64,000 nt of DNA from Macrostomum lignano (GCA_002269645.1 NIVC01003660.1:20695-84694); one strand, 5' to 3'; positions 17,768-22,575 are shown, counted from the first letter of the stretch. The notes: generated by a model not told the origin, from the letters alone. Made by a program: numbers and translations.

Positions 17768-18148
17768 ATGCACAACCATCGAAAGAATTTCAACGATCCG
17801 TTCAAGAGGAGGACAGCCGATACGGGTAGACAGAACTTCCCTATGCCTGCTAGCGACGTCCCCGAACAGGCCAATAATAGCCCAGGCTATGGAACGCTTC
17901 GGCAGCCACCTGAGCCGCAGGTGCAGCCGCAGTTCAGGCGCGACCAGGTTGATCAAAGACGCATGACAATGTCCAGAGCGCCACAGCCTGTTGAGCAACG
18001 CTTCCAAGTATATGATCCGGCAGCGGCCGCCCAGAACTTCATGCCTGGTCAGCCTCCGCCGCCGCCACCGACTCTGCCACCGCCCACACCGCCGCCGATG
18101 CCGCCGACTCCACCGTTGCCGGAGATGTCGAATCCGCCAGAGTCGTGG
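17768..18148 (+). CDS. cGAS/Mab-21-like protein, exon 1 (Pro-rich N-terminal region)
   Basis: Acceptor gccacag|C ATG. Encodes a Pro/Gln-rich peptide. Donor TGG|GTGCGT at 18148/18149 is phase 0, matching the 19251 acceptor. Confidence 0.6.
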
Positions 18149-18289
18149 GTGCGTCAAAATATGATGAGTAGTATGATGATGATTTGTGGCAGTTAAAGTT
18201 GTGCAGCTTGTACACATAGACCAGAATTCGTTCTTCAAAAGGCCTGTGTGGTCAATGTACCGCCTTTAAGATTGGGAGGTGGGGTTGCC

Positions 18290-19222
18290 ACTCTCCCAGA
18301 TGCCCAGTTGTGCCCCTGCCTGCACTCTCCCGATGCCCAGTTGTGCCACCTGCCTGCACCTCCCAGATGCCCAGTTGTGCCCCTGCCTGCACCCTCCCAG
18401 ACCCTCAGTTGTGCCACCTGCCTGCACCCTCCCAGACCCTCAGTTGTGCCCCTGCCTGCACTCTCCCGATGCCCAGTTGTGCCCCTGCCTGCACTCTCCC
18501 GATGCCCAGTTGTGCCCCTGCCTGCACTCTCCCGATGCCCAGTTGTGCCACCAGCGTGCACCTCCCAGATGCCCAGTTGTGCCACCAGCGTGCACCTCCC
18601 AGATGCCCAGTTGTGCCACCTGCCTGCACCCTCCCAGACCCTCAGTTGTGCCCCTGCCTGCACTCTCCCGATGCCCAGTTGTGCCCCTGCCTGCACTCTC
18701 CCGATGCCCAGTTGTGCCCCTGCCTGCACTCTCCCGATGCCCAGTTGTGCCCCTGCCTGCACTCTCCCGATGCCCAGTTGTGCCACCAGCGTGCACCTCC
18801 CAGATGCCCAGTTGTGCCACCAGCGTGCACCTCCCAGATGCCCAGTTGTGCCACCTGCCTGCACCCTCCCAGACCCTCAGTTGTGCCCCTGCCTGCACTC
18901 TCCCGATGCCCAGTTGTGCCCCTGCCTGCACTCTCCCGATGCCCAGTTGTGCCACCAGCCTGCACCTCCCAGATGCCCAGTTGTGCCACCAGCGTGCACC
19001 TCCCAGATGCCCAGTTGTGCCACCTGCCTGCACCCTCCCAGACCCTCAGTTGTGCCCCTGCCTGCACTCTCCCGATGCCCAGTTGTGCCACCAGCCTGCA
19101 CCTCCCAGATGCCCAGTTGTGCCACCTGCCTGCACCCTCCCAGACCCTCAGTTGTGCCACCTGCCTGCACCTCCCAGATGCCCAGTTGTGCCACCTGCCT
19201 GCACCTCTGCACCCTCCCAGAT
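18290..19222. repeat. Intronic GC-rich minisatellite, ~33-35-bp unit CAGTTGTGCC(C/A)CTGCCTGCAC(T/C)CTCCC(G/A)GATGCC
   Basis: Tandem copies that explain the many overlapping Cys/Pro ORFs here. Confidence 0.95.
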
Positions 19223-19250
19223 CCTCACATGCTGCACTTCCAATTGACAG

Positions 19251-19548
19251 GCCGCCGAAATGATGCAAAAATGCGGCTTTGAACGCGACCGAGTCAGCGC
19301 CCACTGGGCCTTCGCGGACGTGCTGGAGAAAATGTGGCGGGATGCCGGTTTTGTATTCGCTGGCAATTTCACCGAGGGCTGGGGCTACAACACCTTCAGA
19401 GTTGACGGCAGGTGCGGCTACGACTCGGCGCTCACCTATAAGTACATCGTGCCAGACTACATGGTGCACATTGCCGGAGCCTGCTCCTGCCGACAGCCGG
19501 TGCAGAAGGTTGTGCTGAACGAGGACGGCTCGGTGACGCTCAACCATG
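19251..19548 (+). CDS. cGAS/Mab-21-like protein, exon 2 (nucleotidyltransferase motif region, degenerate)
   Basis: Acceptor ttgacag|GCC, donor ATG|GTGAGC. Encodes FVFAGNFTEGWGYNTFRVDGRCGYDSALTY, which maps to the hG[S]xxEG...S[DE]h[DE] motif of Mab-21/cGAS-like proteins with substitutions. Confidence 0.75.
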
Positions 19549-19623
19549 GTGAGCAGGATGTTAATGCTGTCTAGTCTGGGCTAAGAAAGCCACAGGTTCT
19601 ATGCTGGCAGAATAGAAAATTTT

Positions 19624-19935
19624 TATCTATCTATCTATCTATCTATCTATCTATCTATCTATCTATCTATCTATCTATCTATCTATCTATCTATCTATCT
19701 ATCTATCTATCTATCTATCTATCTATCTATCTATCTATCTATCTATCTATCTATCTATCTATCTATCTATCTATCTATCTATCTATCTATCTATCTATCT
19801 ATCTATCTATCTATCTATCTATCTATCTATCTATCTATCTATCTATCTATCTATCTGTCTATCTATCTATCTATCTATCTATCTATCTATCTATCTATTC
19901 ATCCATCTATCCATCCATCTATCCATCCATCTATC
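19624..19935. repeat. (TCTA)n microsatellite grading into (TCCA)n
   Basis: Direct reading. Confidence 0.98.
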
Positions 19936-20040
19936 CATCTCAGTCACAAGCCCTAAACGATATAAAAGAAATAAAGAGTTGTTTTCTAAAGCAGTAGAAC
20001 ATGTATTATTATAAAAACTTCAAACACATCTTACCCCAAG

Positions 20041-20171
20041 ATTGCATCGTGCACCTGCGGGCGATGAATTTGCTCAAGGAGGACGCCGTACTGATGGTTA
20101 ACGAGATGCGCAGGCAAGCCACTAAGAGTTTGGGACTCACAGCCTGCGGACCCGCTCTTAGCCTGGAGCAG
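20041..20171 (+). CDS. cGAS/Mab-21-like protein, exon 3
   Basis: Acceptor ttaccccaag|AT (phase 1, matches exon 2), donor CAG|GTGAGT. Encodes DCIVHLRAMNLLKEDAVL...CGPALSLEQ. Confidence 0.75.
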
Positions 20172-20210
20172 GTGAGTATTAAATGTACAGAGTACATTGC
20201 GGATTCTATG

Positions 20211-20410
20211 ACAACAGACACTGGCAACAGACACTGGCAACAGACACTGACAACAGACACTGGCAACAGACACTGACAACAGACACTGACAACAGACACT
20301 GGCAACAGACACTGACAACAGACACTGACAACAGACACTGGCAACAGACACTGACAACAGACACTGACAACAGACACTGACAACCGACACTGACAGCAGA
20401 CACTGACAGA
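20211..20410. repeat. 13-bp minisatellite ACAGACACTG(A/G)CA
   Basis: About 15 tandem copies in the intron. Confidence 0.95.
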
Positions 20411-20466
20411 CATTGATAACAGGAACTCCGATAACGGCAGCTGTCAACCGCCACCCCCGCCCCCAG

Positions 20467-21369
20467 GTCTTCCCCTGCTGCCAGCGGCCCCGCCTACCCC
20501 GCCTGGAGCTGCTGGACCTGCCGGACCTGACCAACCAGCCGGTGTACATTCGGCCGGACGAGTTCGAGCTGCAGGTTGGAGGCCGGACAAGCAGGCAGCC
20601 CACAGGCCGGCTGGACCTCAGTCTGCTGGACAGGGCGCTGTTCCGCAAGCTCACAAGTCACCAAGGCCGACTCTACGTGGCATTGAAGATGCTTCTCCTA
20701 GAAGAGCTACCCAAGAAATACCCCAACGCTGCGTGCTTCTCCGAGGTGCACTGCAAGCAGGTGCTGCTGCACTACCTGCTGGCGAAGCGTCGCAGCGGCA
20801 GCCTCGCCGTGGAGGTTCGCGACGCTCTGCAGCTGATGACGGTGAAGAACGCCGAGGGTCCGTTTCTGCGCGACAATCAGCTGCGCTGCGCCGCCTTCCG
20901 AACCAGCTGGATGCCGCTCGCCACGGCGTGCTCAGCCTCCATTCTGCAGAAAGCTTTGGCCAGCCTGGCCGCCGACTCTGAGCAGCTGCTCATCAATCGG
21001 CTGCGTCGGCTTCAGTCCAGCGTCGCGGAAGACAGCATTGGCGGCGTTGCCGTCTTCCAGCCAATGACGCTGGCAATTCCAGGTCACAAGCGGCAGCTGA
21101 CAGCGGGATTGGGCGCGACCAGGCGGCTCGCCGGCTGCAGGGATGTCGCCTTTTTTGTCTACCGGGTCATGGAGCGGCTGCTCCAGCCACAGCTGACCGA
21201 CAATGTCCGGGATCTGCTGTCGGACATCGATGCTGTGCGATCTCTAGCTGGGGTGACCGCCATCTGCCTGCAGTGCCTGGCGCTCATGAAGATGAACGAC
21301 TGGCAGAGTGCGCAGGCTGTCCTGCGGGAGAGCCGGGCGGCCATGCAGCGGGTGCTGCGGGAGTTCCCG
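20467..21369 (+). CDS. cGAS/Mab-21-like protein, exon 4 (Mab-21 C-terminal helical lobe)
   Basis: Acceptor ccccag|GTC, donor CCG|[35 protein letters not shown]...[15 protein letters not shown] follows the Mab-21 pattern (R.S.S..E..L...L...Q...Y..LK.L....L.SYH.KT.L). Confidence 0.8.
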
Positions 21370-21383
21370 GTAAGTGCTGCAAA

Positions 21384-21608
21384 CAGACAGACAGACAGAC
21401 AGACAGACAGACAGACAGACAGACAGACAGACAGACAGACAGACAGACAGACAGACAGACAGACAGACAGACAGACAGACAGACAGACAGACAGACAGAC
21501 AGACAGACAGACAGACAGACAGACAGACAGACAGACAGACAGACAGACAGACAGACAGACAGACAGACAGACAGACAGACAGACAGACAGACAGACAGAC
21601 AGACAGAC
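21384..21608. repeat. (AGAC)n microsatellite filling a 261-nt intron
   Basis: Direct reading. It produces the QTDR run in the ORF track. Confidence 0.98.
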
Positions 21609-21630
21609 CGACAAACTCAAACTCACGCAG

Positions 21631-22575
21631 GCGAACTCAACCGCCGAGTCAATGGAGCAGTACCTACTCAGCGGCTGGGACTGTGCCTGGCAGTTCAAGG
21701 CCAAGTTGACAATCGAGGAGCCGCAGCACACCGTGAGCCAGCACTACAGACCCATCGGCACGGAGTTCCTGGCCTCCTTCCCGTTGATTCGCTACGCCTT
21801 CTTTCCCTGCCAGATGACGCGAATGCAGCAGATGAGCGGCTGCCTGGTGGAGTACTCGCTTAACATCAACTTCTTGGCGCTGATGAACTGCCTGGTGGTG
21901 CAGACGGTGCCGCAGAACCCGCAGAACACCGAGCTCTGGCGCTGGTTCAACGACAATAAGCCGCTGGAGGCGCAGGAGCTCTTCGCTCTGTCCCTGTCCG
22001 ATCAATACTTGGACCAGCAGCAGCTCAGCCAGCTGTGCCTGCGGCTGCTCGAACGCCTGCGACCGATGCGCCAGCCAAATCAACTACAGCAGCATCCGGA
22101 GCAGCCGAGGCAACGCCTGCCGGAGTTAGACTTCCTGGAGCACCTGCGCATCCGATTGCTGCACCGCTGGATCCGAAGCTTGCCGAGCCAGTCGCGCTGG
22201 GGCCCGGAGGAGGTGCAGTCTTGCCGCCAGCTGGGCCAGCTGCACGCCAGCCTGCCCGGCAGTCAAAGCATCGCCGAAATCCTCGCCCCCGTGTCCGGTC
22301 CCGATCTGTCTAAAACAGCGGCCAGTCAAGTTTTCAAAAAATTGTGCGAATTTCACACGCGCGAACTTGACAACACATTCGGACGCAAGCTGGCTAAGGG
22401 CGAGTACGGGGATCTGGGCCGCCAGTTCCTAGCTGCCAGCCTCTACAGCTGGTACTGCCTGGATTCAGCCACGGCTAAAAAGTACAGACAGACACTGGCC
22501 ACCTTCAGTGCCGGCAAGGGGCCGCAGCTGTTTCCGGAACAGGACACTGGTGACACCGTCAGCCTGCTTGGCTGA
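21631..22575 (+). CDS. cGAS/Mab-21-like protein, last exon (helical C-terminal extension)
   Basis: Acceptor cacgcag|GCG (phase 0). GC-rich coding-style sequence open to TGA at 22573-22575. Spliced CDS totals 2658 nt (885 aa). Confidence 0.8.

Follow-up and report, generated by a model that had tools for sequence, protein, structure and literature searches.

What remains for a protein of the cGAS/Mab-21 class to do when its catalytic motif is broken? The question is raised by a gene in a 64,000-nucleotide stretch of the Macrostomum lignano genome (GCA_002269645.1 NIVC01003660.1:20695-84694), the whole of which was analyzed and is referred to here as the window, with positions counted from its first letter. 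The gene lies on the plus strand at 17768-22575, a span of 4808 nt, and has five exons separated by introns that all begin with GT and end with AG. The joined coding sequence of 2658 nt comprises 885 codons followed by TGA. The 885-residue product, here termed the window protein, is 100% identical to NCBI PAA50355.1 (hypothetical protein BOX15_Mlig024291g1, Macrostomum lignano), and the gene annotated on contig NIVC01003660.1 covers the same 4808 nt. The splice borders, the coding sequence and the identity to PAA50355.1 confirm the intact five-exon, 885-residue frame that had been claimed in an earlier note on this DNA. No publication was found in the literature under the gene identifier. We propose that the gene probably encodes a pseudo-enzyme of an ankyrin-repeat family of cGAS-like receptors (cGLRs) and that it most likely serves as an adaptor or regulator in the pathway of its active paralogues, a role that we infer from sequence comparison.

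Replacement of the Catalytic Residues

The nucleotidyltransferase (NTase) signature was assessed in an alignment of the shared domain (A2) that comprised the window protein, placed first, and 15 paralogues. The two segments quoted in the earlier note were found as quoted, AGNFTEGW being A164-W171 (19359-19382) and DSALTY being D185-Y190 (19422-19439). All 15 paralogues have the motif h-h-G-S-[YF]-[STAG]-[ED]-x-W-[GA]...[DNTG]-G...S-D-[ILV]-D-h...P-[AS]-x-D-x-[VIC], the consensus form of which is VGS-YSEGWGN...ESDIDV...PAVDxV. The Ser and the three Asp residues of this motif are invariant in 15/15 paralogues, and all four are replaced in the window protein. On the plus strand, the Ser of the GS motif is replaced by N166 (19365-19367), the first Asp of DxD by A187 (19428-19430), the second Asp of DxD by T189 (19434-19436), and the third acid, also an Asp, by S267 (20160-20162). 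By this alignment the changes of Ser to Asn and of two Asp residues to Ala and Thr that had been claimed were correct, and the loss is wider than claimed, with the third acid gone too.

The active site of cGLRs has been defined by Li et al. (PMC9980059) as h[QT]GS-X8-20-[DE]h[DE]h-X50-90-h[DE]h. This definition is fitted by all 15 aligned paralogues, with spacings of 20 and ~53 residues as counted on paralogue P0008. It is failed by the window protein, which reads AGN166 ... A187-L-T189-Y ... L-S267-L. The secondary structure of the model described below is consistent with this placement of the residues, having a strand at 161-164, G165-N166 with a short helix, and strands at 187-193 and 265-274.

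Changes were also found outside this motif. The Tyr of an S-Y-H-[AV]-K-T motif, which aligns residue for residue with cGAS in the profile match, is replaced by V364, and the first Ser of an R-x-S-x-S strand is replaced by D320. In cGAS, the Tyr aligned to V364 (Y436 in the human protein) stacks on the bound nucleotide. The combined loss of the Ser, the three metal-binding Asp residues and the stacking Tyr predicts that canonical two-metal synthesis of a nucleotide second messenger would be impossible for the window protein.

Assignment to a cGLR Family

Mab-21 features are undetectable from the window sequence alone and emerge through the paralogues, the family profile, and the structure model. 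A Pfam scan of the 885-residue protein gave no match at E ≤ 10, and a phmmer search of the same protein against all PDB chains gave no match. A word-indexed homologue search with the protein found only the protein itself, and repeating it with the family profile added five M. lignano or metagenome fragments and no out-group relatives. An exhaustive HMMER search, in which residues 125-885 were compared with 1.84 billion representatives, identified 24 phmmer relatives at E < 1e-3 (range 1e-15 to 1e-3). The 20 relatives that were looked up were all from M. lignano. Among those scanned with Pfam, the majority have both ankyrin repeats and Mab-21_C (PF20266), the latter in several cases over the gathering score, and two have a weak MTPAP-like palm.

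A single family-profile relative is not labelled M. lignano, namely P0051, a JGI metagenome protein of 467 residues on a 3.2-kb contig (E 1e-42, PF20266). Its source may be an environmental flatworm, and it could be used as an out-group.

The A2 profile matched PDB entries for mouse and human cGAS (E 8e-8 to 3e-7), Cv-cGLR1 (3e-7), and MAB21L1 (0.035). An AlphaFold2 model of residues 125-434 calculated with A2 had a predicted local distance difference test score (pLDDT) of 67 and a predicted template modeling (TM) score (pTM) of 0.71. When this model was compared with the PDB by Foldseek, all of the listed top 50 matches were chains of cGAS or oyster Cv-cGLR1, with a probability of 1.00, E values from 1.7e-5, and TM scores of 0.39-0.53. 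The structural comparison with cGAS-type proteins that the earlier note had suggested thus returned only cGAS and Cv-cGLR1 among these matches, and the Mab-21-family nature of the protein is borne out by the paralogues, by the cGAS-matching family profile (E 8e-8), and by the model. As modeled, the window protein has the cGAS/Mab-21 fold, in which an N-terminal Pol-beta-like NTase core is joined to a C-terminal helical Mab-21_C lobe of the HhH/H2TH-like type.

The sequence relationships place the protein in an ankyrin-repeat cGLR family specific to M. lignano. It is an outlier in sequence, with identities of 21-25% to the paralogues as against 30-74% within the set of paralogues. Of 46 family columns that are identical in at least 14 of the 15 paralogues the window protein keeps 23, including G165, W171, G172, G180, H200, C205, C207, P264, C275, R318, Q336, G337, K344, H365, and K367. 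Structural residues (Gly, Trp, Cys, His and Pro) predominate among the retained positions. With these columns and its C-terminal domain the protein bears the marks of the family, whose core motifs are the EGWG loop, DGR, H-x4-C-x-C, CC-x-P, QGQ, and HxK. Five M. lignano proteins have been cloned as cGLRs, including PAA45980.1 (Li et al. 2023, PMC9980059, supplement 3), which is a member of the P0009 cluster among the phmmer relatives.

A His/Cys cluster is found family-wide just after the DxD strand (H-x4-C-x-C ... G-H ... C-C). Its positions in the window protein are H200, C205, C207, S221, C274, and C275 (19467-19532 and 20476-20481). H200, C205, C207, and C275 are retained, and the GH histidine is replaced by Ser. 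The cluster may be a zinc site at a place other than that of the cGAS zinc thumb.

Ankyrin Loss and the Shared C-terminal Domain

Nearly all paralogues carry an ankyrin array, either N- or C-terminal, in place of which the window protein has a Pro-rich tail. No ankyrin repeats were detected in the protein by Pfam, and a tblastn search of the 64-kb window with the ankyrin regions of four paralogues found no match and no relic. The tail is encoded by exon 1 (17768-18148, plus strand; residues 1-127), which starts with the ATG at 17768, and is disordered and basic. It contains 32 Pro in 124 residues (26%), and residues 96-118 form the run PPPPPPTLPPPTPPPMPPTPPLP. The closest upstream in-frame stop lies 87 nt before the ATG.

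The C-terminal half of the protein is predicted to be helical. A phmmer search with residues 435-885 matched the C-termini of paralogues P0044, P0009, P0013, and P0010 at E values of 1e-6 to 4e-3, and residues ~466-720 align with the C-termini of active-looking paralogues. In this alignment (A3) the motifs are [FH]-x-P-[FLM]-x-[LF] at about residues 467-472, TA-x-x-CL-x-x-[LM]A at 534-542, D-x-AW-x-[FY] at 588-593, F-x-F-x-P at 627-630, and NF-x-AL at 651-655, followed by an invariant Glu, E687, in D-x-x-E. The A3 profile of the domain gave no match to PDB sequences at E ≤ 10. The last ~130-160 residues are private and align to no active-looking paralogue. On these alignments the C-terminal helical domain is a family trait, and the distinctive features of the window protein are its missing ankyrin repeats and its Pro-rich tail. 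The Pro-rich N-tail and helical C-terminus noted earlier are both present (26% Pro; helix prediction), but the C-terminal extension is not special to the dead copy, residues ~466-720 being shared.

For the proposed regulator, contacts with the active cGLRs, or with their partners or ligands, would be made by the Mab-21 body and the common C-terminal domain. The Pro-rich tail would serve as a docking site for proteins of the SH3, WW, EVH1, or profilin type. The outcome would be that signaling is tuned or rerouted and that no signal is produced.

The same features bear on the alternative that survives best, in which the gene encodes a non-catalytic Mab-21-fold protein unrelated to cGLR signaling, either a structural or organelle scaffold resembling MiD49/MiD51 or a developmental factor resembling MAB21L1/2, with the Pro-rich tail and the helical C-terminus as independent interaction modules. 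The loss of the ankyrin repeats and the private C-terminal tail suggest divergence from the function of the paralogues, the low identity to the paralogues given above is in keeping with this alternative, and there are dead NTase-fold precedents in MiD51, which recruits Drp1, in NF45/NF90 (PMC3926961), and in MAB21L1 (PMC4897736). However, the family-specific C-terminal motifs are still held in common with active-looking paralogues, and expansion within one lineage is the usual pattern for immune genes and not for conserved scaffolds of the housekeeping kind. Neither a transmembrane anchor nor an organelle signal came to notice, although no formal search for either was made. We regard a scaffold unconnected with cGLR signaling as unlikely, while allowing it a real chance.

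A Second Lineage with the Same Loss

Another M. lignano protein, P0069 (BOX15_Mlig015656g2, 844 residues), is 30% identical to the window protein over residues 95-662 (E 3e-56). No Pfam domain is recorded for it, and hence no ankyrin repeats, and it resembles the window protein further in its short Pro-containing N-terminus, its helical C-terminus, and a dead core from which all three acids are lost. P0069 reads FTGNFTEGWGYNLYAMNGRPGFDSGVSCRY at the site where the window protein reads FAGNFTEGWGYNTFRVDGRCGYDSALTYKY. Its active site is GN...G-V-S, with GVS in place of the ALT of the window protein at DxD and Leu rather than Ser at the third-Asp position. It also differs in having seven exons, in lying at another locus, and in having no CNPase-like neighbor.

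The two proteins have the same GNFTEGWGYN loop. This former GS loop lies within the 30-residue segment that is best conserved between the dead lineages, residues 145-174, where identity is 67% compared with ~30% overall. At least two of the four intron positions are shared, at residues 226/227 and 571/572, and a third lies within ~3 residues, the mapping being approximate. Since a lineage only 30% identical to the window protein has the same dead motif, the catalytic loss predates an old duplication.

Two older gene models related to these genes are faulty. P0006 (A0A1I8HBG9, 674 residues), for which no genomic locus is on record, is without the GS/DxD segment; we rejected this as a real feature and regard it as a gene-model artifact, the exon or exons for GN...GVS being present in the transcript-based P0069. 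P0004 (UniProt A0A1I8HD36, 1932 residues) is a model in which a CNPase-like open reading frame (ORF), together with further upstream sequence, has been joined to a copy of the dead gene.

The former GS loop, as the most conserved segment between the dead lineages, would fit a conformational or binding role, and so would be in keeping with a ligand decoy, in which a retained ligand-binding surface of the family soaks up the activator of the active cGLRs (nucleic acid or another pathogen-associated molecular pattern) or a pathogen inhibitor of them and sends no signal. The Mab-21 domain is moreover still mildly basic (pI 8.7, net charge +6). The same is true of most paralogues and of the second dead lineage, and the comparison of domain charge and pI did not discriminate between the readings. 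OASL, an enzymatically dead protein of the OAS/cGAS class that acts by binding (PMC9859756), would be a precedent. The window protein is, however, without the ankyrin repeats, which according to Li et al. (PMC9980059) are the modules by which such cGLRs interact with ligands or proteins. The nucleotide sponge put forward in the earlier note is made less likely by V364 in place of the stacking Tyr and D320 in place of the conserved Ser. A decoy of any kind appears improbable to us.

Comparison of the two lineages also bears on whether the window protein could still be an enzyme, by means of D185, E169, or E269 or by other chemistry in a remodeled pocket. D185 is two residues before A187 on the same strand and E269 is two residues after S267, and side chains at positions i and i±2 face the same way. 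But active-looking paralogues, too, commonly have an acid at the D185 position, where it stands beside a true DxD and so is no replacement for it, and the second dead lineage, which reads DSGVS and LFTE, has no conserved compensating pair. Four catalytic and two substrate-contacting residues have, in addition, been altered together. A supply of acids from elsewhere, which had been named as a refutation of the claim, is disfavored by these alignments, and we consider residual catalysis very improbable.

Maintenance of the Gene

The pseudo-enzyme reading supposes a gene that is kept. The assembly contains three copies, those at the window, at L001 (PAA58336.1, 880 residues) and at L002 (PAA50282.1, 882 residues). 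The five exons are present in all three and are 96.6-100% identical, with in-frame differences of 6 and 9 nt as the sole indels. The pairwise ratios of non-synonymous to synonymous divergence (pN/pS) are 0.14, 0.12, and 0.31. Across the three copies there are 8 non-synonymous and 15 synonymous changes, compared with a neutral expectation of ~3.2 to 1 (binomial P = 3e-5). The introns and flanks are more diverged than the exons, being 93-98% identical with many indels, and the introns vary widely in length because they are built of tandem repeats.

The GenBank annotation of the assembly was derived from an RNA-seq transcriptome assembly with TransDecoder and not ab initio (PMC5730564). Because the annotation is transcript-based, the five-exon model is indirect evidence of transcription and splicing. 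These comparisons indicate that the gene is kept by purifying selection and is not a decaying pseudogene. The earlier view of an intact and still functional gene is supported, as regards maintenance, by the open frame in three copies, the transcript-derived model, the sister lineage, and a pN/pS of 0.12-0.31 among the copies, which is not near the value of 1 that had been named as a sign of decay. A recent pseudogene or annotation artifact with a frame open by chance is hardly credible, for although the genome is highly duplicated and repeat-rich (PMC5730564) and the protein has no direct family match in databases, the 2658-nt frame, which spans five exons bounded by canonical splice sites, stays open in all three copies, the only indels being in frame, the synonymous excess is significant, the gene model is transcript-derived, and the same dead motif is found in a 30%-identical paralogue, so that the loss occurred long before the recent duplication.

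Weighing the Proposed Regulatory Role

Several points weigh against reading the protein as a pseudo-enzyme regulator of active cGLRs. The lining of the pocket by N166, A187, T189, and S267, and the failure of D185, E169, and E269 to substitute for the lost residues, rest on alignment. By itself the protein has no Pfam or PDB sequence match; the usable model is of moderate confidence only, with TM scores of ~0.4-0.5, and the single-sequence AlphaFold model of the full protein is unusable (pLDDT 36). The coding sequences of the three copies are only ~0.5% different, the pN/pS values rest on 23 changes, and gene conversion between the copies could have homogenized the exons. Long-term constraint rests on a single old paralogue from the same species. 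Transcript support comes from the provenance of the annotation, and the underlying reads could come from any of the near-identical copies.

A more elaborate form of the regulator proposal would join the two dead lineages, the window gene and BOX15_Mlig015656g2, in a regulatory tier of a flatworm cGLR network. By way of the shared C-terminal domain, its members would hetero-oligomerize with the ankyrin-bearing enzymes and gate their activation. We offer this as speculation and consider it unlikely. If true, it would be the first case of pseudo-enzyme control within an animal cGLR family, and it would occur in the flatworm phylum, most members of which are reported to have lost cGLR immunity.

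Architecture of the Gene

The remaining parts of the gene, all on the plus strand, are as follows. Intron 1 (18149-19250, 1102 nt) consists almost entirely of a 34-bp minisatellite in 27 copies (18289-19204), and its counterparts in copies L001 and L002 are 256 and 501 nt long, respectively. Exon 2 (19251-19548; residues 128-226 and one further nt) specifies the N-lobe of the NTase core. The degenerate motifs lie here, with G165-N166 (19362-19367) standing for GS, and A187 (19428-19430) and T189 (19434-19436) for DxD, and so do H200, C205, and C207 of the His/Cys cluster. The exon is the only part of the window that was matched by tblastn with 18 paralogue domains. Intron 2 (19549-20040, 492 nt) contains (TATC)x79 at 19624-19940. 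Exon 3 (20041-20171; residues 227-270) encodes a helical insertion and then the strand that bears S267 (20160-20162), and intron 3 (20172-20466, 295 nt) contains a 13-bp repeat in 15 copies (20209-20408).

Exon 4 (20467-21369; residues 271-571) encodes the remainder of the NTase core and the Mab-21_C-like helical lobe to about residue 434 (20958), and then the first half of the C-terminal helical domain. Among its residues are R318, D320 (Ser in the paralogues), V364 (Tyr in the paralogues and cGAS), H365, and K367. Exon 5 (21631-22575; residues 572-885 and the TGA) encodes the second half of the C-terminal helical domain to about residue 720 and then the private tail.

Intron 4 (21370-21630, 261 nt) contains (ACAG)x58 at 21383-21613 and is stop-free and in frame. 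Its retention would add 87 residues, mostly QTDR repeats, with the frame kept. The intron is 513 nt long in L001 and 329 nt in L002, and the frame-preserving length is not conserved. Because intron 4 of the window copy is stop-free and in frame, a mechanical ORF of 720 residues arises at 20413-22575. This ORF was rejected as real coding sequence, the (ACAG)n intron being 513 and 329 nt long elsewhere and 329 not being a multiple of 3. The 3′ flank has a 40-bp repeat in 16 copies at 22799-23439, and every intron as well as the 3′ flank is dominated by tandem repeats.

Neighboring Genes

An ORF for a 2H phosphoesterase of the CNPase family (PF05881; Pfam E 5e-28) is located 3.4 kb upstream of the gene, at 13786-14412 on the plus strand. 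It looks intact and has the HxT motifs LHITA and AHVTLA. The adjacency is kept at L001 (5942-6586) and L002 (1927-2586) and is absent at the P0069 locus (L004). A cyclic-nucleotide or 2′-5′ phosphodiesterase beside a cGAS-like gene is suggestive but may have arisen by chance. An operon-like functional link to the CNPase gene was set aside, because none but the three recent copies show the adjacency and the P0069 locus lacks it.

Elsewhere the window contains a fragment of a Mib/HERC2+ZZ E3 ligase (1376-2107, minus strand), an F-box gene (31874-32950, minus strand), an ORF with a SPRY domain (55417-56655, plus strand), and an RNase H/reverse transcriptase-like ORF that is probably a retroelement (61633-63027, minus strand). 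A low-complexity repeat at 51388-53010 gives ORFs of ~500 residues on both strands, with a Cornifin-like Pfam match that is likely spurious.

Comparison with Known Systems

Dead NTase-fold proteins are well known and the parent family of the window protein has been catalogued, but the dead subfamily itself is not described. No paper that combines "cGLR" with "pseudoenzyme" was found by full-text search of the literature. Dead cGLR members remain undescribed because surveys such as that of Li et al. 2023 (PMC9980059) select for intact active sites. The cGLR families of animals are large, and most of their members are orphans. RNA interference works in M. lignano. Transgenesis and an annotated genome are also available for this species (PMC5730564), and the question of a regulator is therefore testable there.

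The closest known relatives are the ankyrin cGLRs of M. lignano (PAA45980.1, PAA86972.1, and PAA93208.1; PMC9980059). Like the window protein they have an NTase core with Mab-21_C, the EGWG loop, the His/Cys cluster, and a C-terminal helical domain with FHPF, TA-x-x-CL, D-x-AWRF, and NF-x-AL. The window protein differs from them in having no ankyrin repeats, a Pro-rich N-tail, N/A/T/S in place of S/D/D/D, and Val in place of the Tyr of SYHAK.

Among proteins of known structure, cGAS and Cv-cGLR1 (PDB 6CT9, 4JLZ, 8GJW, and others) are the best matches of both model and profile and share the bilobed arrangement of NTase and Mab-21_C. In contrast to these, with which it is 11-14% identical, the window protein has no catalytic triad and has a long loop of 20 residues between GS and DxD. 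Its His/Cys cluster follows the DxD strand and is not at the place of the zinc thumb of cGAS.

MiD49/MiD51 (MIEF2/MIEF1) and NF45/NF90 resemble the window protein in having a cGAS-like NTase fold from which the catalytic residues are lost, and they are scaffolds or receptors rather than enzymes (PMC3926961). No sequence relationship between them and the window protein was detected here. MiD51 is anchored by a transmembrane segment and has kept the ability to bind ADP/GDP, whereas the window protein belongs to a lineage-specific cGLR clade and has lost the nucleotide-stacking residue.

OASL, although "devoid of enzymatic function", has a part in immunity (PMC9859756). Like the window protein it is a dead paralogue in an expanded NTase family, in its case the innate-immune OAS/cGAS class, and it acts by protein or RNA binding. 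Mouse Oas1b is a further example of an enzymatically dead OAS. OASL differs from the window protein in belonging to the OAS subfamily and not to Mab-21/cGLR, in being a vertebrate protein, and in having ubiquitin-like domains and no Pro-rich tail. By analogy, it would nevertheless be the closest functional counterpart of a regulator of active paralogues. An old, conserved dead member that is tied to active relatives by its C-terminal domain is a candidate for pseudo-enzyme regulation of the kind found in the OAS and kinase families.

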